From the IMG/VR virus record IMGVR_UViG_3300026184_000250, positions 1-9,244 of that record: a stretch of 9,244 nucleotides of DNA; one strand, given 5' to 3'. Below are positions 1 to 9,244 of the stretch, one piece after another; positions within the stretch are counted from its first letter, which is position 1, and each line of letters opens with the position of its first letter. The translations under genes and the position numbers were made by a program. The notes beneath the pieces are model-generated. The model worked only from the letters and a program-made list of their open reading frames with translations, searched no databases and had not been told where the DNA came from.

Positions 1-385
1 TAGACTGCATATTTCTAGATGCAGCATCAAACTCAGCCTGAGCCTCAGCAGTTACAGCTTCCTTAATTTCCTGCCTTTTTCCTGAAGGCATTAAAGCCTC
101 TATTATATAAGCAATAGGACTCATCTTTAATCCAAATCTGAGGAAGCCTTCGGGAACTATAGATGCTAATAGAGGCTGATTAAGTTTAGTTTCAGCAGTT
201 TGTAGTCTAGCAAAAGCCTTCTGGTAGCCCAATCCGAATTGCTCAAACTCCTTAGCGAAGCCAGCATAGTACTCTGGAGTTTCTGTAGGAGCAGGAAGGA
301 TAGGAGCCTCTCCACTAGTGTCTGTTACTAGTGATTCTCCTATTTCTCTAGAAGTCAACTTATGCGCACCTTTTATTTCTGGCAT
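1..385 (-). CDS. Gene downstream of portal, runs off the window edge; probable virion/structural protein (MPEIKGAHKLTSREIGESLVTDTSGEAPILPAPTETPEYYAG...)
   Basis: Not in the ORF track. ATG at 385 lies 1 nt after the portal TAA (387-389), preceded by AGAAGGA. The frame is open for 128 codons to the edge. Function is inferred from position only. Confidence 0.8.
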   Translation of the reverse strand, partial: MPEIKGAHKLTSREIGESLVTDTSGEAPILPAPTETPEYYAGFAKEFEQFGLGYQKAFARLQTAETKLNQPLLASIVPEGFLRFGLKMSPIAYIIEALMPSGKRQEIKEAVTAEAQAEFDAASRNMQS

Positions 386-386
386 A

Positions 387-2156
387 TTATCCTTCTATCT
401 CACCAGCTGACAGTTGTCTTCCAGCAGGAGTTCTTGGAGTTGCTTCGGGTCTTCCCATACCAGCAACCTTAGTAGTAGGCTGCTCAGGAGCCATAGCCCC
501 TGCTAACTGCTGTAGAGCCATATCCGCCATCATCTCATATAGATTAGCAGCTTCCATATCCTTAGCCTTATCTCTCAGATACGCTGCTTGTTCTCTATAG
601 TACTGAATCAGAGCTATCATACTATTACTAGGATGTGCCTCGGCCTGGTCAGCTCTTCTTTGTGCTCTCTCCTGTAGCGGGTCTCCAATATCAGGAAATA
701 ACTTTCTAGATACATAGCTATAACTCAACGCAAACTCTGGGTCTAGCATATGAGCAGTAGTAGCCCTTTGGATTAGGTCTCCAGGTATCTCTATCTCATA
801 CTCAGCAGATACTACGCTATAGTCTGGAAGCTTATCAGGATATTTCCAGCCATAAGGTTTGATACCTCTATCTCTTATATCTGCTAAATCATCATTGTCT
901 ATATCAGATAGTGCATCTATTATAGCCTGATGAAAAGGCTTCATTACTTGATTTGCTGAGGCAGCTATCTGGCTCATAACATAAGCAGTTATCTGTCCAG
1001 CTACAGCTCCATGCATAGCCCAACTAACTCCTCCTCTTTGCATCATAGCTTCTAGGTCAAGCTGGGTACTTCTCAATTCTAATGGTATAGGAGGAGTAGC
1101 CAAAAAGTCTACAGAATCATCAGGCCCTCCTCTGAATATAGCCCCACGCTTAAATACATCCTCAGGCTTTACTATAGCATGACCACTTCTACTACGCTCA
1201 AAGATTCTAGGTTGAGCAGTATCACGCAGAAGTTGTAGTGAGAATGTCCACCATCTATTCCAGGTCTTATAGATATTCTCATTAGTAGCTATAATAGACT
1301 GACCCAGCTCAGCCTTCCATCTATCTCCAGCCACTTTCTGAGTCTGTAGCTTTATTGTAGATGAGTATGTTGGTAGGTAGCCTTCTGTCAAAGTTCCCAT
1401 ATCAGGCAGACCACCTACAGGAGATATATAAATAGGAATCTTCTTAAATCTTGTAGGCTCAAACTTTACCAGACTATCGCCTATGACTATAGCGTTCCAT
1501 GCTATAGCAGTAAAGGGAAAATTGTCTGCTATCTCCATCCACCAATAGTCGTAAACTACTACATTGCGGCCTACAGTAGCCTGCCATTGAGGATAGGGAC
1601 TAGATAATTTCCAGTCATTACGCTTAGCCAGATTAACAGCTTGTTTAGCTGTAGTAGCGTAAATATGAGCTACTTCATCTAATCCTAGCATATTATCCCA
1701 CATAGGAAAAACCTCAGCAGGATTAAGAGGCTCCTTATAAGTTCTACTACCATCATCAGAGTTCATGCTGAGCATAGCATACCATCCAGTAGCAAGCATG
1801 AAGCCTATGAAGGTTCTCAATATGCCTCGCCTAGGATTTGACCTACGAAATGTATTATCAGCATCCTTCCAACTGATATTAAAGTACCTATTAACCTGAG
1901 ATACTGCACTTGCTACATTAAGGTCAGACATATCATAGTCTCTGACTCTATGAGGTATCTTGGTATCTAGAAGATGTAGTGTAAGATTATATAGTGCTCT
2001 GGGGTCATTACCCACAAAGGATTCCATCTTCTCCTGCTTAAGCTCGTCTATCATCTCTATAAGTCTATACCACCGCTTCATAGCCTCATTGCGAGGATTC
2101 CAGAAGGTCTTAAGCTCATTACAACGAGATACCACTTCATTTACATTTTGTTTCAT
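387..2156 (-). CDS. Phage portal (head-tail connector) protein, 589 aa
   Basis: Size, position two genes downstream of TerL, and portal-like layout (N-terminal helices, NDPRALYN, LNPAEVFP, KIPIYISP, helical stem, low-complexity Pro/Ala C-tail). ATGA overlap with the upstream gene. Confidence 0.8.
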   Translation of the reverse strand: MKQNVNEVVSRCNELKTFWNPRNEAMKRWYRLIEMIDELKQEKMESFVGNDPRALYNLTLHLLDTKIPHRVRDYDMSDLNVASAVSQVNRYFNISWKDADNTFRRSNPRRGILRTFIGFMLATGWYAMLSMNSDDGSRTYKEPLNPAEVFPMWDNMLGLDEVAHIYATTAKQAVNLAKRNDWKLSSPYPQWQATVGRNVVVYDYWWMEIADNFPFTAIAWNAIVIGDSLVKFEPTRFKKIPIYISPVGGLPDMGTLTEGYLPTYSSTIKLQTQKVAGDRWKAELGQSIIATNENIYKTWNRWWTFSLQLLRDTAQPRIFERSRSGHAIVKPEDVFKRGAIFRGGPDDSVDFLATPPIPLELRSTQLDLEAMMQRGGVSWAMHGAVAGQITAYVMSQIAASANQVMKPFHQAIIDALSDIDNDDLADIRDRGIKPYGWKYPDKLPDYSVVSAEYEIEIPGDLIQRATTAHMLDPEFALSYSYVSRKLFPDIGDPLQERAQRRADQAEAHPSNSMIALIQYYREQAAYLRDKAKDMEAANLYEMMADMALQQLAGAMAPEQPTTKVAGMGRPEATPRTPAGRQLSAGEIEG

Positions 2157-2416
2157 ACTATTACTCCAAGTACTAATGATACTGCTCCTGCTACAGAGAA
2201 TATAAAGGTAGCAAATCCTACTACTGTTCCAGCAGAGTAGTAGTGATGCTCCTTCCTAATACTCTCAACAAGCTTATCTGTTGGTTCATACCTGCTCTGC
2301 CAAGGACAGTAACCATCAGCTATTCCCTCTATAAGAGCATGAACCTCATTAGGAGTGCTTAAGAACTCAGGAAGCTTAAGTCCACCTAGAAACGCCTTAA
2401 TACTAGAAAACTTCAT
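2153..2416 (-). CDS. Small membrane protein, 87 aa, with a C-terminal hydrophobic segment
   Basis: Start reassigned from 2476 to ATG 2416, which forms an ATGA overlap with the upstream stop. C-terminus VVGFATFIFSVAGAVSLVLGVIV is a probable TM helix. Its own stop overlaps the portal ATG. Confidence 0.75.
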   Translation of the reverse strand: MKFSSIKAFLGGLKLPEFLSTPNEVHALIEGIADGYCPWQSRYEPTDKLVESIRKEHHYYSAGTVVGFATFIFSVAGAVSLVLGVIV

Positions 2417-2979
2417 ATTATTACTACTGCTCCTTCTAGCACATAGAATGGGAGGTCTTTGTCCTCCCAGTACCATATCTGGTCATTCTGTGGCTCTAGT
2501 AGCATAATGTCCCTATTTGGAAAAACAGCCAAGTTGTAAGCATGACCAGCTTGATAATCTAGTACTACTCCAACCTGATTTATACCATACTGGTCAGCAT
2601 GAGCCTTAAAGCTAATAGCAAAGTTACCGCACATAAAGGACTTACGATACTCAAACTGGTCAACCCAATCCCAAGCTACAAACTTTATAAATCCTTCTTT
2701 GTTAGTTAGCCTAAACTCAGGGCCTAGGGGCAGACGGATAACATTAGCTTTGAAGTCAGCTAGTACAGTCTGAACCCACTCAGTGTCCTTCTCCACAACA
2801 TACTCAAGCTCTGGTGGAGGAGGATGAGATAGCAAGCTCTCTAAGTATTCAACTCTGATATTAGCGTCATTCAAATCACCTGCTAGAGTATCTTTCTCTG
2901 TATAACACTTAGCAAGCTCACGATTACAGTTCTCGCTACATCCTAGAAAGCTGCATATGAATCCTTTTAATCCTTCCAT
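2413..2979 (-). CDS. Papain/transglutaminase-like cysteine protease (MOA Agglutinin_C-like domain) with N-terminal coiled coil, 188 aa
   Basis: Start reassigned to ATG 2979 (AAAGGAG 8 nt upstream, just after the TerL stop). Motifs FMCGNFA, GHAYN and LEPQND give a putative triad C117-H146-E162, matching the xCxxFA / HAYN / EPQ pattern of MOA-type domains. Confidence 0.7.
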   Translation of the reverse strand: MEGLKGFICSFLGCSENCNRELAKCYTEKDTLAGDLNDANIRVEYLESLLSHPPPPELEYVVEKDTEWVQTVLADFKANVIRLPLGPEFRLTNKEGFIKFVAWDWVDQFEYRKSFMCGNFAISFKAHADQYGINQVGVVLDYQAGHAYNLAVFPNRDIMLLEPQNDQIWYWEDKDLPFYVLEGAVVII

Positions 2980-2995
2980 ACTTCTATCTCCTTTC

Positions 2996-4678
2996 CTACC
3001 ATTCATCAGGCCATCCAGCCGAGCCTGCATAACCTCTCTGTACTGACTGAGCATTTCTGCATACTATAGCAATAGCACCAGCGTCGTGATGGTCATCTGC
3101 ACCTACCACTAAGATTCCACTCTTGCTCATAGGATTTCTACGGATATTCTTACACTGGCTCCAGAATCGTATGTCCTGACAGTCTATATGTTCAAGGTGT
3201 CTACTAACCTCAGTAACCATATAAGGCTTAGTGGATAGATTAGTCTGCCAGCCTATTGCTTTTACAAGCTTACCAGTTCTTACATCCTCCCTATAGTATA
3301 GGTCAGGATAATCTCTAAGATGACTAACTATATCTAGATTATCTTCTGGAGCTATTACCGCATTATTGTAGTAATGTGCTACTTCCTTCATCAGCAGAGC
3401 CATTTCCCACTCATCATAAAAGCCTGCTAGTGTAGCACAATGCTGCATAACTGGAGGAATTTCCTTATCATCCTTACTTTTATAGCCCTCAAGAAAGTGC
3501 CATACATGACCTACTGACTCAGACGTTTTCCCTTTGCCTGGGTCTATAGATACTATATAACCTAAACTATCTTCTCTGTCACACCAGATATCTAATGTAG
3601 CAGATATAGTATCTTTAGTTCTTGAGTCAGTAGCTACTATATTCTTCTGGCTTTTAGCGGGTATACAGTAGTGTATCTTATCAACTATAACATCAGAGCT
3701 GTAAGCTTGGTCTCCTGCTACCAGAAAGCAATTCTCATCATCCTCAGGAAATTCCTGCTCAAATAGAAGAACAGTATCGCCACTTCTTCTAAGGCTAGCT
3801 ATCTCAGCTTTCTTATACCTTCTCCATCTAAGCTTAGCCATAGCATCCTGTTCAGACATATCATAGATGTCCATGAGAACCTGCATTAACAGTACTTCAT
3901 CTGACTGGATATTAGATAGTGGGTCTTTATTGTCTTCATCTAGGCAGAATGGGTCTTCAGCATACATAATATACTCTGGTTGAATATACCAAGGATAGAA
4001 GTGGTGCCTATAGACTGATTTGGCTACAGAAGTTCCTTCCTTAGCTGCTCTATACATCTCACAGAAATCATTATCTTCTCCATTAGGAGTAGATAATACT
4101 CTTATTTTAGTTCCAGGCTTAGCAGGAACTCTCTGAGCAGCTGATGCAAACACCAATTCATGCGTTCCTTCAAACCAGAATCCGTACTCATCTAGTAGTA
4201 GATTATGTATTGGCTCTCCCCTACCAATAGTATAGCTCCTAGAGCTAAAAATATACATGATAGAGTAGAATGGATGCTTAGTATCCTTAGTTACCCATGT
4301 TAACTCCTCAGCGCTTTTATGCTCAAGCTTAGGAATAGTAGGAATCCTTCTTTCCAGAAACTGATGAAACCGCTTGGCTTTGATGATAAGACGCTTAGCA
4401 TTGGTCTCATCATAGCTAATAATAACTGATACAGTTCCACTAAGAGTTATATTATCAAGATAGAAATCAGCTAGATGAAGGGATGTTGCCCCTACAGATG
4501 CTGGCTTAACATAGATATCTCTAAATGTAGAAGTCTGAAGCATATCTAGCTGAATAGGATTAAGGATGAACGGAACTAATCTTCGTTCCTTATCCTCTAT
4601 CTGGAGTAAGGACTCCATAGTGAGCCGTCTATCTGAGAATAAAGCTTCAGCAGCTTCATCCTGCGATATAGTCTGCAT
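2996..4678 (-). CDS. terL: Terminase large subunit, 560 aa
   Basis: Adenine-binding LNPIQ, deviant P-loop VKPASVGATS, Walker B LLLDEYGFW preceded by GRG, motif III STPNG, FEQEFPE linker, and RNase H-like acidic residues (SIDPGKG, APEDN, ADDHHD). SD AGGAG 5 nt before ATG. Confidence 0.93.
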   Translation of the reverse strand: MQTISQDEAAEALFSDRRLTMESLLQIEDKERRLVPFILNPIQLDMLQTSTFRDIYVKPASVGATSLHLADFYLDNITLSGTVSVIISYDETNAKRLIIKAKRFHQFLERRIPTIPKLEHKSAEELTWVTKDTKHPFYSIMYIFSSRSYTIGRGEPIHNLLLDEYGFWFEGTHELVFASAAQRVPAKPGTKIRVLSTPNGEDNDFCEMYRAAKEGTSVAKSVYRHHFYPWYIQPEYIMYAEDPFCLDEDNKDPLSNIQSDEVLLMQVLMDIYDMSEQDAMAKLRWRRYKKAEIASLRRSGDTVLLFEQEFPEDDENCFLVAGDQAYSSDVIVDKIHYCIPAKSQKNIVATDSRTKDTISATLDIWCDREDSLGYIVSIDPGKGKTSESVGHVWHFLEGYKSKDDKEIPPVMQHCATLAGFYDEWEMALLMKEVAHYYNNAVIAPEDNLDIVSHLRDYPDLYYREDVRTGKLVKAIGWQTNLSTKPYMVTEVSRHLEHIDCQDIRFWSQCKNIRRNPMSKSGILVVGADDHHDAGAIAIVCRNAQSVQRGYAGSAGWPDEW

Positions 4679-4690
4679 ATAAGCTCCTAC

Positions 4691-4795
4691 TTACCTTTTC
4701 TGAGGTTTCCCTATAGGCCCTTTACCTCCTCCTCTTCCTAGTCCTATTCCTGCTCCCTTACTCCTAATTCTACTTCCAGGACATCTTCTAGCCAT
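4691..4795 (-). CDS. Unannotated 34-aa basic Gly-rich peptide MARRCPGSRIRSKGAGIGLGRGGGKGPIGKPQKR
   Basis: Fills the gap between the holin-like gene and TerL. GGGAGG lies just upstream of ATG 4795, the start overlaps the upstream stop by 8 nt, and the TAA abuts the TerL SD. Confidence 0.75.
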   Translation of the reverse strand: MARRCPGSRIRSKGAGIGLGRGGGKGPIGKPQKR

Positions 4796-5057
4796 GACTC
4801 CTCCCATTCATTCTTTGTAAAGTTGTTACTAACTCTTGCAAAGCCTTAGTATTCTCCTCTCTAGTATTCTGCTCGCTCTCAATCATACCTGCCAACTGTT
4901 TCCTATCTTCCCTAAGTCTATTCTCATGCCCAGAGCATATATCCGCTATCCTTCTTTCACTAGATTCTCTATCTCTCCTATACATCAGAAAGATTATGCC
5001 AGCTAGGATAGCTACAGCTCCCCCATTGGCTAGTGCTTCGATGATAGCTTGCTCCAT
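4788..5057 (-). CDS. BhlA/UviB-like holin candidate, 89 aa
   Basis: Single N-terminal TM segment (GGAVAILAGIIFLMY) followed by RRD and a charged coiled coil, the BhlA/UviB architecture. TAATG overlap with the upstream gene. Confidence 0.6.
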   Translation of the reverse strand: MEQAIIEALANGGAVAILAGIIFLMYRRDRESSERRIADICSGHENRLREDRKQLAGMIESEQNTREENTKALQELVTTLQRMNGRSHG

Positions 5058-5239
5058 TATCTTTTTCTTAGCTTAAGTGTCACTGGAGTTCTAGAAGCAG
5101 GCTTGCTAGTACTCTGCCTCTTTCTAGTCTCCCTGCCTACACTTCTAGGTTCTTTCCTTCCAATACGACTAGCTTGAGCTCTTCTGATATTTCGTCTAGA
5201 TGCTTGAGCCTGCTTAGCTGTCCTTGCTCTTCTCACCAT
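5057..5239 (-). CDS. Small very basic Arg-rich protein, 60 aa; possible nucleic-acid-binding core protein
   Basis: 22 of 60 residues are R/K, with an internal AQASR duplication. It overlaps both neighbours in the operon. Function is inferred. Confidence 0.65.
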   Translation of the reverse strand: MVRRARTAKQAQASRRNIRRAQASRIGRKEPRSVGRETRKRQSTSKPASRTPVTLKLRKR

Positions 5240-5774
5240 CGGAAGTTACTCTTATCCTATCAGTCCTAGTTATCTCAACACTCCTAAGCTTATCCTGATT
5301 ATTGGTTATAAACTCAGAAAAGTTCCACCCATCACTGCTAATACCTCTCATAGCCTGCTCAAGGATTTGTAGCTGTTGAGGTGTGTATGCAGTACGGAGT
5401 TTTAGGAGATATTCATGCTCCTGTCTAGTCATTATCTCCTCTTCTATAGATTTCCTGAGGATTCTATAATCTTTCTCAAGAACTAGCTTGAAGTTGCGAA
5501 AGAAGTCTAGCTCTATATATTCCTTGCTGAGCTCCTTCCTTATTTCGGGTATCCTTAGTTCAAGCTGGCTAAATGCAGTATCCCTACGTTGCTCATCTAG
5601 CCAGGTCATATCTAGACCCAGCATATATAGAGCTTCTTCGATAGTAATTCCACATGCTAGATAGCCAAAGTATTTAGCTCTATTATCATCTCTACGCCAG
5701 GGAAGGAGAGTCTGAGCTATAGCAACTTCAGATGGAGTATCTGAGTTAGGAGGCACAGTGGTAGGTTCTATCAT
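5214..5774 (-). CDS. Terminase small subunit candidate (N-terminal HTH), 186 aa
   Basis: First gene of the packaging operon. HTH-like segment CGITIEEALYMLGLDMTWLDEQRRDTAF is followed by helices. The ORF-track start at 5792 falls inside the promoter spacer, so ATG 5774 is preferred. Confidence 0.6.
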   Translation of the reverse strand: MIEPTTVPPNSDTPSEVAIAQTLLPWRRDDNRAKYFGYLACGITIEEALYMLGLDMTWLDEQRRDTAFSQLELRIPEIRKELSKEYIELDFFRNFKLVLEKDYRILRKSIEEEIMTRQEHEYLLKLRTAYTPQQLQILEQAMRGISSDGWNFSEFITNNQDKLRSVEITRTDRIRVTSDGEKSKDS

Positions 5775-5782
5775 ATCAGTAT

Positions 5783-5811
5783 AGTATAACATTGTGTACT
5801 AGTGTTGTCAA
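5783..5811 (-). promoter_or_regulatory. Sigma70/sigmaA promoter for the packaging operon, leaderless or nearly so
   Basis: TTGACA (5811-5806), 17-nt spacer, TGn-TATACT (5788-5783). ATG follows 8 nt later with no SD. Confidence 0.8.
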
Positions 5812-5858
5812 GGATACAAATACATATTATTATTTATTGTCATTAGTGAATAAGATGG

Positions 5859-5887
5859 TTGACAACTATATCCTGATATGATATAAT
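5859..5887 (+). promoter_or_regulatory. Consensus sigma70/sigmaA promoter, leaderless
   Basis: TTGACA (5859-5864), 17-nt spacer, TGn-TATAAT (5882-5887). ATG 5894 is 6 nt downstream. Confidence 0.88.
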
Positions 5888-5893
5888 ATGGTT

Positions 5894-6088
5894 ATGAAGT
5901 GTGAGATATGTGGAAGAAGTAATCTAACTGCTAGAGAGCTAGCAGTACATAGAAAGCTTTTCCATAATGAACAGCCTCAGCAGATTAGTCCTATGTCTGC
6001 TAAGGTATGTCCTGACTGTGGAGCTGCACTAGTTCTTCAGGAAGGTTGTGAGTATTGTAGCATATGTGGATACAGTAAATGTGGATAA
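5894..6088 (+). CDS. 64-aa double zinc-finger protein (C2H2 plus NrdJ-tail-like Zn ribbon)
   Basis: CEIC-x12-H-x4-H, then CPDCGAALVLQEGCEYCSICGYSKCG. Start placed at the expected transcription start. Confidence 0.8.
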   Translation: MKCEICGRSNLTARELAVHRKLFHNEQPQQISPMSAKVCPDCGAALVLQEGCEYCSICGYSKCG

Positions 6089-6153
6089 GATGATAAGTAT
6101 AAAAGAAATATAATTATAATTCCGTATCAGATAGAACTAGGAACATTGAGCAA

Positions 6154-6336
6154 ATGTTAGCTAAGTTAATATGCAAGTTATTCAAGCATAGATGGCTCTT
6201 TGAAATAGGAGTAATAGACCCGCCCAGTAAGAGCATCTGTCATATACCTAGTAGTGAAATTAAACTCATATTCTGTACTAGGTGTGGAAAGATTATATAT
6301 GATAGAGAGGAGATACTAAAATTGACATCTGGCTAA
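6154..6336 (+). CDS. DUF1660-like small phage Zn-binding protein, 60 aa
   Basis: LICKLFKHRW...CTRCG pattern typical of DUF1660-like prophage proteins. Confidence 0.65.
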   Translation: MLAKLICKLFKHRWLFEIGVIDPPSKSICHIPSSEIKLIFCTRCGKIIYDREEILKLTSG

Positions 6337-6791
6337 CTGTCTGTCGTAAAACTGTTCCTAAGTGTGCTTACTGCGGAGAACCTATACACTTGGGGGAGAT
6401 AATGGTAGCTGGCAGGATATGGAAGACTAGAGATGGAAAGGTAAGGAGATTTGTAAAGAACTTAAGATGGCACGGACAGAAGATAGTAAACCCAGAAGAG
6501 CCTCCAATATGCTGCTGGCTAGAAGCAGGTCTAGAGTATCTACGAACTCACCCAAAAGAAGAGACAAGAGGAAGAAAGCAGCTTCAGCTAACAAAAGCAC
6601 AAAAAATAGAAAGGTCAAAGATATCAAGACAAAGGGCAAGGTTAGTCCAAAAACTAAAGACACTAATGGAAGTTCCCCTAGCAAATCAGGAGCAAAAGGA
6701 TATAAACGATATAATAAAGATAGGAAGCCAGATAGAACAGTTGAAAGAGAGGATAATACCACTAGGAGGACTGCCTCCGAACTGGGAATAG
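6321..6791 (+). CDS. Zn-finger plus coiled-coil protein, about 156 aa, probable ATT start
   Basis: The frame is open from 6306. GAGGAG (6307-6312) lies 8 nt before ATT 6321. The extension beyond TTG 6390 supplies RKTVPKCAYCGEPIHLGE, completing a CxxC...WH...C Zn site. Confidence 0.65.
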   Translation: MDIWLTVCRKTVPKCAYCGEPIHLGEIMVAGRIWKTRDGKVRRFVKNLRWHGQKIVNPEEPPICCWLEAGLEYLRTHPKEETRGRKQLQLTKAQKIERSKISRQRARLVQKLKTLMEVPLANQEQKDINDIIKIGSQIEQLKERIIPLGGLPPNWE

Positions 6792-7135
6792 AATGGATAG
6801 GAGATTATTGCCCAGACAATAAACCCCATAACTTAATATGTATATATGAGTTGCATGGCGGAAGCTTATTTAGGTGTAGTAATTGTAGAAAGTATATATG
6901 GCTTCCTACATTTATTAAGGATGCTGCTAAGCTCGATAGTCTCATTGACAGCTATGGAACTACTACTGGGTATTGCAAGTATCTTGATACTAATAGAAGT
7001 GCTAAGATGCTAGTAGCTAAGCTGCAAGACCTATGGTATGCTAGAGCTAAGATTAAGGATGATAGGAAGTTTACTAAATTGGTAGTTAGAACTATGGAAG
7101 ACAGCGAGTATGATAGGAGGAACAATGGCACTTAA
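6782..7135 (+). CDS. Hypothetical Zn-binding protein, about 117 aa, start uncertain
   Basis: The C-terminal part of ORF 6467..7135 looks coding (CPDNKPH...CSNC). AGGAGG 6764-6769 precedes in-frame CTG 6782 and ATA 6788, which overlap the upstream stop. Confidence 0.55.
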   Translation: MGIEWIGDYCPDNKPHNLICIYELHGGSLFRCSNCRKYIWLPTFIKDAAKLDSLIDSYGTTTGYCKYLDTNRSAKMLVAKLQDLWYARAKIKDDRKFTKLVVRTMEDSEYDRRNNGT

Positions 7136-7583
7136 AGAAACCGTTACTAAGGAAGAAGTACTAAAATTTGGAAGCGTAGCAAAGACTCTAGTGGCAAGAC
7201 ATAACGTAACTTCACCTATGAGACTAGTTATTATAGCTTCTACCGAGAATCCAGATAGCAGCCATACTGTTCTATTTGATTTTGAGGAGGAGCCTGCTCA
7301 GGAATTAGCACCGAAGCAACCTCGCAGGCCAGTCCCTATACCACCTGAGCCAAGAATAGCAGTAGTAAAAATCCCTAGAGGTGTAAATGCTAAGGCTCTG
7401 GAAGGATTCATCAATCAGCTTGCCAATACTATAAAAGGCCAGGTGTTTGTTGTACCTATAAACTTTGAAGTGCTGCTGGGCAATACTGCTAAAGAAGAGG
7501 TGGAGAAGATACATAACCAGATACACAAGATGCTTGATATAAATCCAGAATCAGATGAGCCACCAGGGATAGCTGGTAAGTAG
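7125..7583 (+). CDS. Hypothetical protein, 152 aa, two domains with a Pro-rich linker
   Basis: AGGAGG 7115-7120 precedes ATG 7125, which overlaps the upstream stop. Confidence 0.8.
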   Translation: MALKETVTKEEVLKFGSVAKTLVARHNVTSPMRLVIIASTENPDSSHTVLFDFEEEPAQELAPKQPRRPVPIPPEPRIAVVKIPRGVNAKALEGFINQLANTIKGQVFVVPINFEVLLGNTAKEEVEKIHNQIHKMLDINPESDEPPGIAGK

Positions 7584-7752
7584 CAATTTTACAAATCCAA
7601 ATTCTGCGAAGAGACATAGTTATAAAGTATCCTCACCAAAGTTGCCTGACCGTATGGGTGGTGTTCTTTCATTTAGGACATAACCATATGGGAGCAATAT
7701 CCTTAGGAATAAATCATACAAGAACAGGCTTATCAAAACATACCGAGCAAGG

Positions 7753-7766
7753 CGAACATATGTTCT
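7753..7766. promoter_or_regulatory. LexA/DinR SOS box 1
   Basis: CGAACATATGTTCT is a perfect GAAC-N4-GTTC palindrome 1 nt upstream of a -35 hexamer. Confidence 0.8.
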
Positions 7767-7767
7767 A

Positions 7768-7796
7768 TTGACAAACGGTTCTCGATATGGTATGAT
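7768..7796 (+). promoter_or_regulatory. Sigma70/sigmaA promoter
   Basis: TTGACA (7768-7773), 17-nt spacer, TGn-TATGAT (7791-7796), followed by SD AAAGGAGGT 7802-7810. Confidence 0.85.
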
Positions 7797-7815
7797 ATAC
7801 CAAAGGAGGTGTGCC

Positions 7816-7989
7816 ATGACAGGGCAGGAACTAAATACCGAGTGGTGTCGCCGAATGGACATCACAACTAAAAGCATGATACAATGCCGAGAACAGGGTG
7901 CTGTATCACAAGAGTACCTCGATGGGTTCATTGAGGCAGTTAAAACGAGCATGAACCTATTGGAGGCAATCCTCACCGAGCAGCAATAG
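7816..7989 (+). CDS. 57-aa acidic helical hypothetical protein flanked by SOS boxes
   Basis: AAAGGAGGT lies 5 nt before ATG 7816. The ORF-track start at 7768 is the TTG of the -35 hexamer. Confidence 0.75.
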   Translation: MTGQELNTEWCRRMDITTKSMIQCREQGAVSQEYLDGFIEAVKTSMNLLEAILTEQQ

Positions 7990-7996
7990 GATGATT

Positions 7997-8023
7997 AGAA
8001 CATATGTTCCGAGCAAAGGTTCT
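7997..8023. promoter_or_regulatory. LexA/DinR SOS box 2 plus an adjacent degenerate box
   Basis: AGAACATATGTTCC (7997-8010) has the same 12-bp core as box 1. CGAGC-AAAG-GTTCT (8010-8023) has one mismatch. Confidence 0.72.
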
Positions 8024-8056
8024 GTTAATTTCCTAGAACATTATGTCAACTATCCC

Positions 8057-8085
8057 TTGACAACTCAAACCGAGTATGGTACAAT
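8057..8085 (+). promoter_or_regulatory. Sigma70/sigmaA promoter
   Basis: TTGACA (8057-8062), 17-nt spacer, TGn-TACAAT (8080-8085). Confidence 0.85.
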
Positions 8086-8093
8086 CTGATTAC

Positions 8094-8163
8094 ATGATGG
8101 AATCACAGACCATCATTGGTACTGGTAAAGTGGCAACAGTACCGGCACCTTAACAATTAAATA
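8094..8163 (+). promoter_or_regulatory. Structured 5' leader: two hairpins plus a boxA-like motif
   Basis: Stems ATGATGG/CCATCAT (8094-8116) and GGTACTG/CAGTACC (8118-8143), then GCACCTTAACA (8145-8155), 9/11 identical to rrn boxA GCTCTTTAACA. Confidence 0.55.
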
Positions 8164-8180
8164 AAGAAACGGGAGGTACA

Positions 8181-8750
8181 ATGGCAAACGGAAAACAGAA
8201 GCAAGCACAAGCCGAACCACAGGATTCAGTTGCACAGGAGACAGTCACTGAGGAACAGCCATCACAAGAGCAACTCAAATCCCAACTCCAGCAGGCATTG
8301 GCTGAGAACGACTGGAAGGCCGTAACCAAGATAAGCCGCCAGATAGACCAGATAGCCAAACAACAGGAAAAGGTTGAACTGGATGCCAAGCGGCAGGCAT
8401 TGGTGGCAGTGGAGAATCTCGTAAAGGAAAGTATCATGCGAGTAATAACTCCACTTTATGACGCTGGAGAACTTGACAAGGCAGATGGTATCTGGCTATC
8501 CTGGGACTTTGGTGAGCAAGTCCCAACTGTTCGACTGACATTCAGGGCAACAAGGACACCTAAGGCAGGTGGTGGCGGTACAGGCAAGAAGTTCGATGTT
8601 AGCACCGACTCATTGCTGGAGAAGTATGGAGGTGAGATATTCGACTCTGAGACAGGCCAGACCTTCAGGGAAGCATACAACTCCAATACTGACAAGAACT
8701 TCAGGTATGGCCTAAGGACGAAGTTGCTCAAGAAGGACGGTATCATATAG
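8181..8750 (+). CDS. 189-aa protein with coiled-coil N-terminus, basic Gly-rich linker and small C-terminal domain; putative DNA-binding protein
   Basis: SD GGGAGGT, with its own promoter and terminator. Function is inferred from architecture only. Confidence 0.85.
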   Translation: MANGKQKQAQAEPQDSVAQETVTEEQPSQEQLKSQLQQALAENDWKAVTKISRQIDQIAKQQEKVELDAKRQALVAVENLVKESIMRVITPLYDAGELDKADGIWLSWDFGEQVPTVRLTFRATRTPKAGGGGTGKKFDVSTDSLLEKYGGEIFDSETGQTFREAYNSNTDKNFRYGLRTKLLKKDGII

Positions 8751-8776
8751 TACCAGACCAGAACCAATAAGAATAT

Positions 8777-8808
8777 GGACTGCAAGTTGCCAGCAGTCCT
8801 TTTCTTTT
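8777..8808 (+). terminator. Intrinsic (Rho-independent) terminator
   Basis: GGACTGC-9 nt loop-GCAGTCC followed by TTTTCTTTT, 26 nt after the stop at 8750. Confidence 0.85.
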
Positions 8809-8850
8809 GCTCAGAATAGACAAGAAGAGGCAGAAGTAAGTATAGTTACT

Positions 8851-8867
8851 TGTTGCATGATGCAACA
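8851..8867. repeat. Perfect palindrome TGTTGCAT-G-ATGCAACA, operator-like
   Basis: 8-bp arms with a 1-nt centre. The right half recurs (GATGCAACAGA) at 8904-8914. Confidence 0.6.
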
Positions 8868-8918
8868 GACCAGTCCATAATTCGGATAAGTTCAGGTGAT
8901 ACGGATGCAACAGAAAGA

Positions 8919-8948
8919 TTGACATGAGATAGGGTAGTATGATATAAT
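8919..8948 (+). promoter_or_regulatory. Sigma70/sigmaA promoter, leaderless
   Basis: TTGACA (8919-8924), 18-nt spacer, TGn-TATAAT (8943-8948). ATG 8955 is 6 nt downstream. Confidence 0.82.
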
Positions 8949-8954
8949 GGTAAT

Positions 8955-9119
8955 ATGAAAGTGAAGATATGCGACTGGGATATAGGAATTAGTAGACAGT
9001 ATGCTTATATCTACATTGGGAGTAAAAGGCCTTGGCTAGATAATAACATACAGTTTGGGCAGGATTTATTTATAGTATTCTTAGGATTTATGCTATACAT
9101 AGCAGTATCATGGAGATAA
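8955..9119 (+). CDS. 54-aa small protein with a hydrophobic C-terminus (MKVKICDWDIGISRQYAYIYIG...LFIVFLGFMLYIAVSWR)
   Basis: Below the ORF-track cutoff. The ATG sits at the expected transcription start and the stop is followed by the next SD. Confidence 0.65.
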   Translation: MKVKICDWDIGISRQYAYIYIGSKRPWLDNNIQFGQDLFIVFLGFMLYIAVSWR

Positions 9120-9144
9120 CTTATAAGGAGGAAATGGATAAAGA

Positions 9145-9244
9145 ATGAGAGTTGCTCTATCAGTTACCAAAGTATTTGAAGTAGAAGATATGACACTAAC
9201 TGAGCTGAGACGAAGGGTAGAGGCTGGTGATGAAGGGGGGATAG
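9145..9244 (+). CDS. Hypothetical protein, runs off the window edge (MRVALSVTKVFEVEDMTLTELRRRVEAG...)
   Basis: AAGGAGG at 9125-9131 upstream; the frame is open to the edge. Confidence 0.55.
   Translation, partial: MRVALSVTKVFEVEDMTLTELRRRVEAGDEGGI

Follow-up and report, generated by a model that had tools for sequence, protein, structure and literature searches.

A papain-fold cysteine peptidase paired with a tail-anchored membrane protein as a candidate lysis cassette of uncultured phages

RESULTS AND DISCUSSION

A peptidase gene and a membrane-protein gene are coupled within a packaging operon

The window, by which we mean the whole stretch of DNA analyzed here, comprises 9,244 nucleotides (nt), positions 1 to 9,244 of the IMG/VR virus record IMGVR_UViG_3300026184_000250. 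A single minus-strand operon makes up its left two-thirds and carries, between the genes for the large terminase subunit (TerL) and a putative portal protein, a cassette of two genes: one encoding a 188-amino-acid (aa) cysteine peptidase (2413-2979) and one encoding an 87-aa tail-anchored membrane protein (2153-2416). We see about an even chance that these genes form a lysis-type cassette in which the peptidase is a candidate endolysin, with the peptide part of peptidoglycan as its likeliest substrate. An initial annotation of the window had proposed a non-muralytic lysis module made up of three open reading frames (ORFs) around TerL, namely, the two just introduced and a BhlA-like transmembrane (TM) protein at 4788-5057. 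We recovered all three ORFs on the minus strand at these positions, and the gene that they flank is indeed TerL. The operon and its promoter are composed as follows.

1..383, minus strand: N terminus of a giant ORF truncated by the window edge, assigned by homology to the L005 gene that follows the portal gene
387..2156, minus strand: putative portal protein, 589 aa, assigned from size and position only
2153..2416, minus strand: tail-anchored partner of the peptidase, 87 aa, with a C-terminal TM helix
2413..2979, minus strand: MOA/PSL-type papain-fold cysteine peptidase, 188 aa, candidate lytic enzyme
2996..4678, minus strand: TerL, large terminase subunit (phrog_2, E = 3.5e-13)
4788..5057, minus strand: 89-aa protein of BhlA-like architecture, its N-terminal TM helix being followed by a charged helical tail
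5057..5239, minus strand: very basic 60-aa protein, its gene flanked by the 192-aa ORF and the BhlA-like gene
5214..5792, minus strand: 192-aa ORF, first in the leftward operon, with a small terminase subunit suggested by position
5783..5811, minus strand: sigma-70-type promoter, TTGACA-17-TATACT with TG, heading the cassette-bearing leftward operon

The 3' end of TerL (2996) adjoins the peptidase start (2979), and GGAAAGGAG precedes the peptidase ATG at 2979. A public gene call (P0001) is identical to the peptidase ORF, with the same 188 aa. The peptidase stop codon overlaps the ATG of the 87-aa gene at 2416 as ATGA, and a second ATGA joins the stop codon of the 87-aa gene to the ATG of the putative portal gene (589 aa). 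The 87-aa protein has a single hydrophobic helix at its extreme C terminus (residues 69-87), which, with the first of these overlaps, bears out the earlier description of 2153-2416 as a coupled TM protein.

The peptidase is predicted to be a MOA-type Cys-His-Glu enzyme

The peptidase is laid out as a long N-terminal helix (approximately residues 16-49), a proline-rich linker, and a catalytic domain that contains Cys117, His146, and Glu162. Searched alone, the window protein matched Pfam Agglutinin_C below threshold (E = 0.07, 14 bits; cut-off, 26.8). Metagenomes hold 53 close relatives of it, and a 24-homolog alignment contains 16 invariant columns, with C117, H146, and E162 among them. The profile of these 24 homologs matched MOA (2iho) at E = 2.8e-5, and the DC..F, HAYN, and EPQ motifs of the peptidase aligned on MOA Cys215, His257, and Glu274-Pro-Gln276, for which catalytic roles of Cys215, His257, and Glu274 have been described (PMC8244254). 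Agglutinin_C (PF18021) was matched by 23 of the 24 homologs and Lectin_C_term (PF18022) by 17, both families being classed as papain-like (PMC10318531), and 15 of the 24 weakly matched the Gln_amidase "papain fold toxin" family (best E = 0.0015).

An AlphaFold model of the peptidase (predicted local distance difference test [pLDDT] score, 80) consists of the long N-terminal helix followed by an alpha/beta domain. Its only match in the Protein Data Bank (PDB) at E <= 0.001 was PSL (3phz, E = 8.9e-4). Among viral structure models (BFVD), the top match was A0A140F3M5 of the archaeal filamentous virus Pyrobaculum filamentous virus 1 (E = 1.9e-11; template-modeling score, 0.66-0.73), a 167-aa protein with 28% identity that is annotated as an Agglutinin C-terminal domain-containing protein; the Klosneuvirus protein A0A1V0SJY7 also matched structurally. 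Given these two homologs, the peptidase domain is spread over viruses of all three domains of life. Taken together, profile, alignment, and model predict that the window protein is a real MOA-type papain-fold Cys-His-Glu enzyme, as the initial annotation had proposed.

By profile and model, the fungal chimerolectins MOA (Marasmius oreades agglutinin; 2iho/3ef2) and PSL (3phz) have, in their C-terminal protease domain, the same fold as the viral peptidase, which shares the Cys-His-Glu triad and the EPQ motif with MOA. The two proteins carry a ricin-B lectin domain, whereas no such domain was found in the viral peptidase, which has only 188 aa and begins with the long helix. Unlike MOA and PSL, the viral enzyme is virus-encoded and paired with membrane proteins. 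The oxyanion-hole residue Trp208 of MOA is not aligned in it, and the Asp next to the catalytic Cys in MOA is Met in the window protein.

An exhaustive profile search returned 1,618 clusters (clustered at 50% identity) at E <= 0.001. Conservation of Cys, His, and Glu reaches 99% for each in the best 150 representatives of these clusters, no two of which exceed 50% identity. Family-wide, the residue preceding the catalytic Cys, an Asp that corresponds to MOA Asp214, is conserved at 95%. Around the catalytic Cys (residues 116-118; window positions 2626-2634), D-C-E becomes M/R-C-G in the TerL-portal subclade, a change that may alter metal dependence or specificity. Selfish elements were also observed at this residue in four clusters. 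P0142 contains a putative intein whose first residue is Cys and whose last two are His-Asn, with the catalytic Cys immediately after it, and LAGLIDADG/HTH inserts in P0070, P0127, and P0163 lie exactly at the catalytic Cys codon. Insertions of this kind are typical for sites under strong functional constraint.

Comparison with other papain-type families came out for Agglutinin_C and not for the wall hydrolases CHAP and NlpC/P60. None of the 24 family members had a Pfam match to CHAP or NlpC/P60, the peptidase model matched no CHAP or NlpC/P60 structure (best NlpC/P60 structure, 4xcm, E = 0.87), and the window peptidase itself matched no lysin family in Pfam or PHROGs. A tblastn search with three family members gave no match in approximately 50,000 deposited phage genomes. 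DNA and protein queries against such genomes (the window itself, its peptidase and putative portal protein, a marine homolog, and the amidase fusion described below) returned only distant TerL matches. We found no account in the literature of the function of this domain in phages, and it is apparently undescribed in viruses.

No signal sequence was found in the peptidase. We rejected a lipoprotein or spanin reading of its N terminus (FLGC), since the homologs do not share the Cys.

The cassette is conserved and mobile among related phages

We fetched 38 related loci, searched their ORFs with hidden Markov models of the small proteins, and counted linkage in the close clade, which comprises 16 distinct loci. 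In every one of these 16, the tail-anchored gene lies downstream of the peptidase gene. It overlaps that gene or starts within approximately 10 bp of it in 13 loci, and the two are separated by one or two small genes in L006, L024, and one L023 copy. Immediately upstream of the peptidase gene, 11 loci encode a two-TM (2-TM) protein with a charged C terminus, and in L006, L022, and L024 an unrelated multi-TM protein takes its place. A 2-TM or multi-TM gene is thus found upstream of the peptidase gene in 14 of the 16 loci, and the window lineage (window and L008) has neither. A separate small ORF encodes the N-terminal helix of the peptidase in L006, L020, and L021.

In the window, L001, L005, and L008, the cassette separates TerL from the portal gene. 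In L003, L006, L014, L017, L019, and L021, it immediately precedes the small terminase gene, which is where lambda has its lysis genes, and in L020, L022, L023, and L025, it is flanked by head genes on one side and a tail-fiber gene on the other. The cassette therefore occurs in at least three genome contexts and moves independently of portal, giant-protein, and head genes, and the linkage of the peptidase to a membrane-protein gene, which the initial annotation had pointed out in the window, is kept across them. A mobile cassette of an enzyme and membrane proteins, with interchangeable membrane partners, has by analogy the appearance of a lysis cassette, and the pair is probably the cell-lysis enzyme unit of many related phages.

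These contexts also bear on the alternative, raised in the initial annotation, of a noncanonical head-maturation (prohead) protease. The location of the peptidase gene between TerL and the portal gene, within the packaging/head operon of the window, would suit such an enzyme. However, a prohead protease would be expected to stay with head genes and to need no membrane partners, whereas elsewhere the cassette lies upstream of the small terminase gene or past capsid/connector genes beside tail-fiber genes, and in these loci the peptidase is always paired with membrane proteins. In addition, some family members have N-terminal membrane or export segments, and no similarity to known prohead protease families was found (Pfam, PHROGs). 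Since the cassette moves independently of head genes, the head-protease alternative fits poorly, and we regard it as highly improbable.

Mobility relative to portal, giant-protein, and head genes likewise argues against a membrane-associated protease with a non-lytic task, such as processing of the giant protein or the portal protein, host takeover, or superinfection exclusion, as does the frequent location upstream of the small terminase gene, a classical place for lysis genes. Such a role would be in keeping with the translational coupling of the peptidase gene to the portal gene in the window, where the giant ORF follows, and with distant family members that are encoded without membrane partners among early, nucleotide-metabolism, and replication genes. 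The weak Gln_amidase similarity described above would leave room for nonproteolytic chemistry, and the small membrane proteins match no holin family. On the other hand, the cassette had no PADLOC match, and the amidase fusion described below points to the cell wall. We consider a non-lytic role unlikely overall. The same lack of a PADLOC match led us to reject membership in a defense system.

Small membrane proteins accompany the packaging and peptidase genes

Ahead of its C-terminal helix, the 87-aa protein has a helical N-terminal domain with invariant E..H and HYY motifs, and the invariant residues of the tail-anchored family are E24, H26, G31, H58-Y59-Y60, G63, and G67. A model of the protein (pLDDT 85) matched no solved structure. 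The possibility of a unimolecular spanin was rejected, as no signal or lipobox was found and the conserved Cys lies mid-domain.

The 89-aa protein encoded at 4788-5057 has a single hydrophobic helix (residues 5-23) followed by a charged helical tail, and it has the architecture of BhlA/UviB proteins (approximately 70-90 aa, an N-terminal TM helix, and a charged helical C-terminal part). The label "BhlA-like" given in the initial annotation holds for this architecture but not for family membership. The window copy did not match Pfam Holin_BhlA at E <= 1, none of seven copies did so at E <= 0.01, and phrog_2429 was matched by the window copy only (E = 1.6e-3), its six relatives giving no match. 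The protein is thus like BhlA/UviB (PF10960; phrog_2429) in size and architecture, with one weak PHROG match, but unlike them it has no Pfam match and is encoded next to TerL or the portal gene rather than next to an enzyme gene. In the relatives examined, the BhlA-like gene always adjoins one of these two genes and never the peptidase gene: the gene precedes TerL in the window, L001, L005, and L008 and has TerL on one side and the portal gene on the other in L014 (3701-3928) and L017 (4014-4235). Membership in the BhlA family is not supported by these comparisons, and the protein is possibly a holin, as the sole other holin candidate in the window. In L021, an unrelated C-terminal-TM protein (12633-12896) stands in place of the BhlA-like single-TM coiled-coil protein.

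An amidase fusion and a search for other lysins

Family members with additional N-terminal sequences provided a first indication of what the peptidase might cut. P0080 is a fusion of an Amidase_2 domain (41.7 bits; cut-off, 26) with the peptidase domain (29 bits; cut-off, 27.1). The fusion gene is present in two samples, on one contig each, with a gene for a 63-aa 2-TM protein after it. P0080 resembles two-domain lysins, of which the staphylococcal CHAP + amidase enzymes are an example. P0147 has an SLT-like N terminus (GES...YGLYQI), although the match is weak (E = 0.004), and P0180 and P0201 have Gly/Ala-rich N-terminal hydrophobic segments resembling those of signal-arrest-release endolysins; the contigs encoding members with such N termini are short, and their gene context is uninformative.

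P0080 is preceded by a protein of approximately 90 aa. Proteins of the same soluble family (approximately 80-90 aa; V.V.W.DA ... VGF ... IP.GCI) accompany the cassette in L003, L006, L021, and L024, and the family is absent from the window. Its members were located at the following positions.

L039, 968-1240: soluble protein of approximately 80-90 aa
L003, 9456-9728: same family
L006, 4008-4268: same family
L024, 3758-4000: same family
L021, 8111-8389: same family

No classical lysin domain (amidase, muramidase, or M23) was found in any window ORF, in agreement with the initial annotation. Nor was a classical lysin found in the parts of related genomes that we read, namely, approximately 30 kb of the 40-kb contig behind L026/L043 (Pfam, PHROGs), approximately 28 kb of the 42-kb contig behind L013/L042, L001, and 43 large ORFs from six other loci. 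The initial annotation had taken the absence of classical genes as a sign of a non-muralytic module. This does not follow, because papain-fold peptidases can themselves be wall hydrolases, and the fusion of P0080 to Amidase_2 argues against it. The other half of that interpretation, a role in lysis, is made reasonable by the conserved and mobile linkage described above.

Promoters and ribosome-binding sites point to a bacterial host

Five sigma-70 promoters were found in the window, all of them intergenic and with an extended -10 TG; two scored 12/12 and three scored 11/12.

5859-5887, plus strand: sigma-70 promoter
8919-8948, plus strand: sigma-70 promoter
5811-5783, minus strand: sigma-70 promoter
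7768-7796, plus strand: sigma-70 promoter
8057-8085, plus strand: sigma-70 promoter

At three of the promoters, an ATG lies approximately 7-9 nt past the -10 element (5894, 8955, and, on the minus strand, 5774). This spacing suggests leaderless or near-leaderless transcripts, so that translation may begin downstream of the annotated starts at 5888 and 5792. Strong Shine-Dalgarno sites also occur after a promoter, for example, AAAGGAGG before the ATG at 7817. The 69%-identical relative L008 has three 12/12 sigma-70 promoters, and the sequences upstream of ORF starts showed a 2- to 6-fold enrichment of Shine-Dalgarno motifs in every locus tested, including L009 and L029.

In a species-genome collection of 185,579 genomes, only two matches were found, L008 and L009, and both were in archaeal metagenome-assembled genomes (MAGs). 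L008 (CAYUTF010000085.1) is in a bin labeled "uncultured archaeon," and L009 (CAYVWD010000055.1) is in a bin assigned to Ca. Nitrosopelagicus. Both look like mis-binned bacteriophage contigs. An archaeal host for the window lineage was rejected in view of the perfect sigma-70 promoters of the window and L008 together with the Shine-Dalgarno enrichment. On the strength of these sequence signals, we assign the window phage a bacterial host and regard the archaeal bin assignments as unreliable.

The window also contains two identical perfect palindromes, GAACATATGTTC, at 7754-7765 and 7998-8009, compared with 0.07 expected by chance. Their inverted arms extend to 14 nt when the flanks are included, and the copy at 7754 directly adjoins the -35 box of the 7768-7796 promoter. 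No box of this type was found in the close relatives fetched. The boxes could be operators for LexA (Cheo type) or for a phage repressor. GAAC-N4-GTTC is the LexA box in many peptidoglycan-bearing phyla as well as in Dehalococcoidia, and the boxes say nothing about the cell wall. A Dehalococcoidia host is a guess, and a non-muralytic peptidase acting in such a wall-less host, as envisaged in the initial annotation, is in our view a minority possibility.

These host signals can be set beside a further alternative, a lysis module whose peptidase cuts an S-layer or another envelope protein, either in a host without peptidoglycan or in addition to wall hydrolysis. MOA, for its part, cleaves proteins and is activated by Ca2+/Mn2+ (PMC8244254), and the best viral structural match to the window peptidase comes from the archaeal Pyrobaculum filamentous virus 1. 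P0201, with its N-terminal hydrophobic segment, lies on a halophile-like contig, no classical lysin was found in the related phage DNA examined, and both genome-collection matches were in archaeal MAGs. However, the sigma-70 promoters and Shine-Dalgarno sites of the window and L008 imply that the archaeal binning is probably spurious. Nothing indicates a bacterial host without peptidoglycan, GAAC-N4-GTTC not being specific to Dehalococcoidia, and one family member is fused to a peptidoglycan amidase. Cleavage of an S-layer or envelope protein by the window enzyme is therefore a rather doubtful option. Put more broadly, viral MOA-like peptidases might be a widespread, undescribed class of egress enzymes with which bacterial and archaeal viruses cut S-layers or other wall proteins. 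The window enzyme, delivered by its tail-anchored partner, would then breach a protein envelope in place of peptidoglycan or alongside it; we would give this generalization a low probability.

The P0201 gene (L045, 1586-2167) lies on a 2.5-kb contig of 48% G+C on which all four ORFs are strongly acidic, one of them having 74 D/E versus 15 K/R residues. Given this composition, the virus is probably one of a salt-in halophile, possibly an archaeon.

The peptidase as a candidate endolysin

Under the endolysin reading, the cassette would be transcribed together with the packaging genes, and with their timing, from the sigma-70 promoter at 5811-5783, and its translation would be coupled to that of the portal gene. 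Having no signal sequence, the 188-aa peptidase would be made in the cytoplasm and would gain access to the envelope through small membrane proteins. Those involved would be the tail-anchored partner (all relatives), the 2-TM holin-like protein (most relatives), and, in the window phage, perhaps the N-terminal-TM protein. The Cys117-His146-Glu162 center would then cut peptide bonds of the envelope. The likeliest substrate is the peptide part of peptidoglycan, in which case the enzyme would be the endolysin itself, working like CHAP or NlpC/P60, and would not be a stand-in for a wall enzyme in a wall-less host. Judged from its sequence, the peptidase is a candidate for a new lysin catalytic domain inside a known kind of system.

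Several observations weigh against this reading. Only one cluster has the amidase fusion, and no additional wall-hydrolase fusion came up in two targeted searches. The related genomes were read in part, none of them end to end, and a classical lysin could therefore lie in the unread part. The peptidase has no profile or fold match to CHAP or NlpC/P60, and the window subclade has replaced the Asp before the catalytic Cys with Met or Arg. Homologs occur in viruses of peptidoglycan-free hosts, namely, Pyrobaculum filamentous virus 1 and the probable halophile virus, which implies that the domain is not peptidoglycan-specific everywhere. Of the membrane proteins, none of the 41 small ones scanned against Pfam and PHROGs matched a holin family at E <= 0.01, and the window lineage is without the 2-TM gene. 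Finally, distant family members lie among thymidylate synthase, ribonucleotide reductase, and replication genes and have no membrane partners.

Compared with known systems, the cassette is closest in form to those built around CHAP or NlpC/P60 enzymes, which likewise place a papain-superfamily Cys-His enzyme beside small membrane proteins, are mobile, and sometimes lie upstream of terminase. Unlike those lysins, the peptidase has no sequence or fold match to them, no recognized wall-binding domain, and a tail-anchored partner. A likeness by role only exists to PeiW and PeiP of methanogen viruses, pseudomurein endoisopeptidases that are cysteine peptidases cutting peptide links of the wall: in both cases the lytic enzyme would be a virus-encoded cysteine peptidase, but here the host is a bacterium.

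Should the peptidase be the lytic enzyme, it would add a new catalytic domain to the phage lysins, along with a new type of membrane partner. Its family is large and almost entirely uncultured, and practical interest would lie in new lysins against sediment or marine bacteria. The homologs in an archaeal virus and a probable halophile virus would allow a direct test of how viruses breach protein-only envelopes; to our knowledge, how tailed archaeal viruses do so is still largely an open question.

Other genes of the packaging operon

The putative portal protein itself had no family match, and the proteins at its position in the relatives have 588-594 aa. In the phage group of the window, a giant ORF directly follows the portal gene. 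It encodes 1,966 aa in L005 (12607-18504), at least 1,899 aa in L021 (14744-20440), and at least 870 aa in L010 (7900-10502), and in L001 the region is split into ORFs of 914, 554, and 590 aa. No Pfam domain was found in the giant ORF at E <= 0.001. The 192-aa ORF at 5214-5792 had no family match in Pfam or PHROGs, and its position suggests the small terminase subunit.

A K/R-rich protein of 60-70 aa is kept upstream of TerL in the window (5057-5239) and in L001 (7912-8124). This basic protein of the packaging operon had no family match; its gene precedes the BhlA-like gene in the window and follows it in L001.

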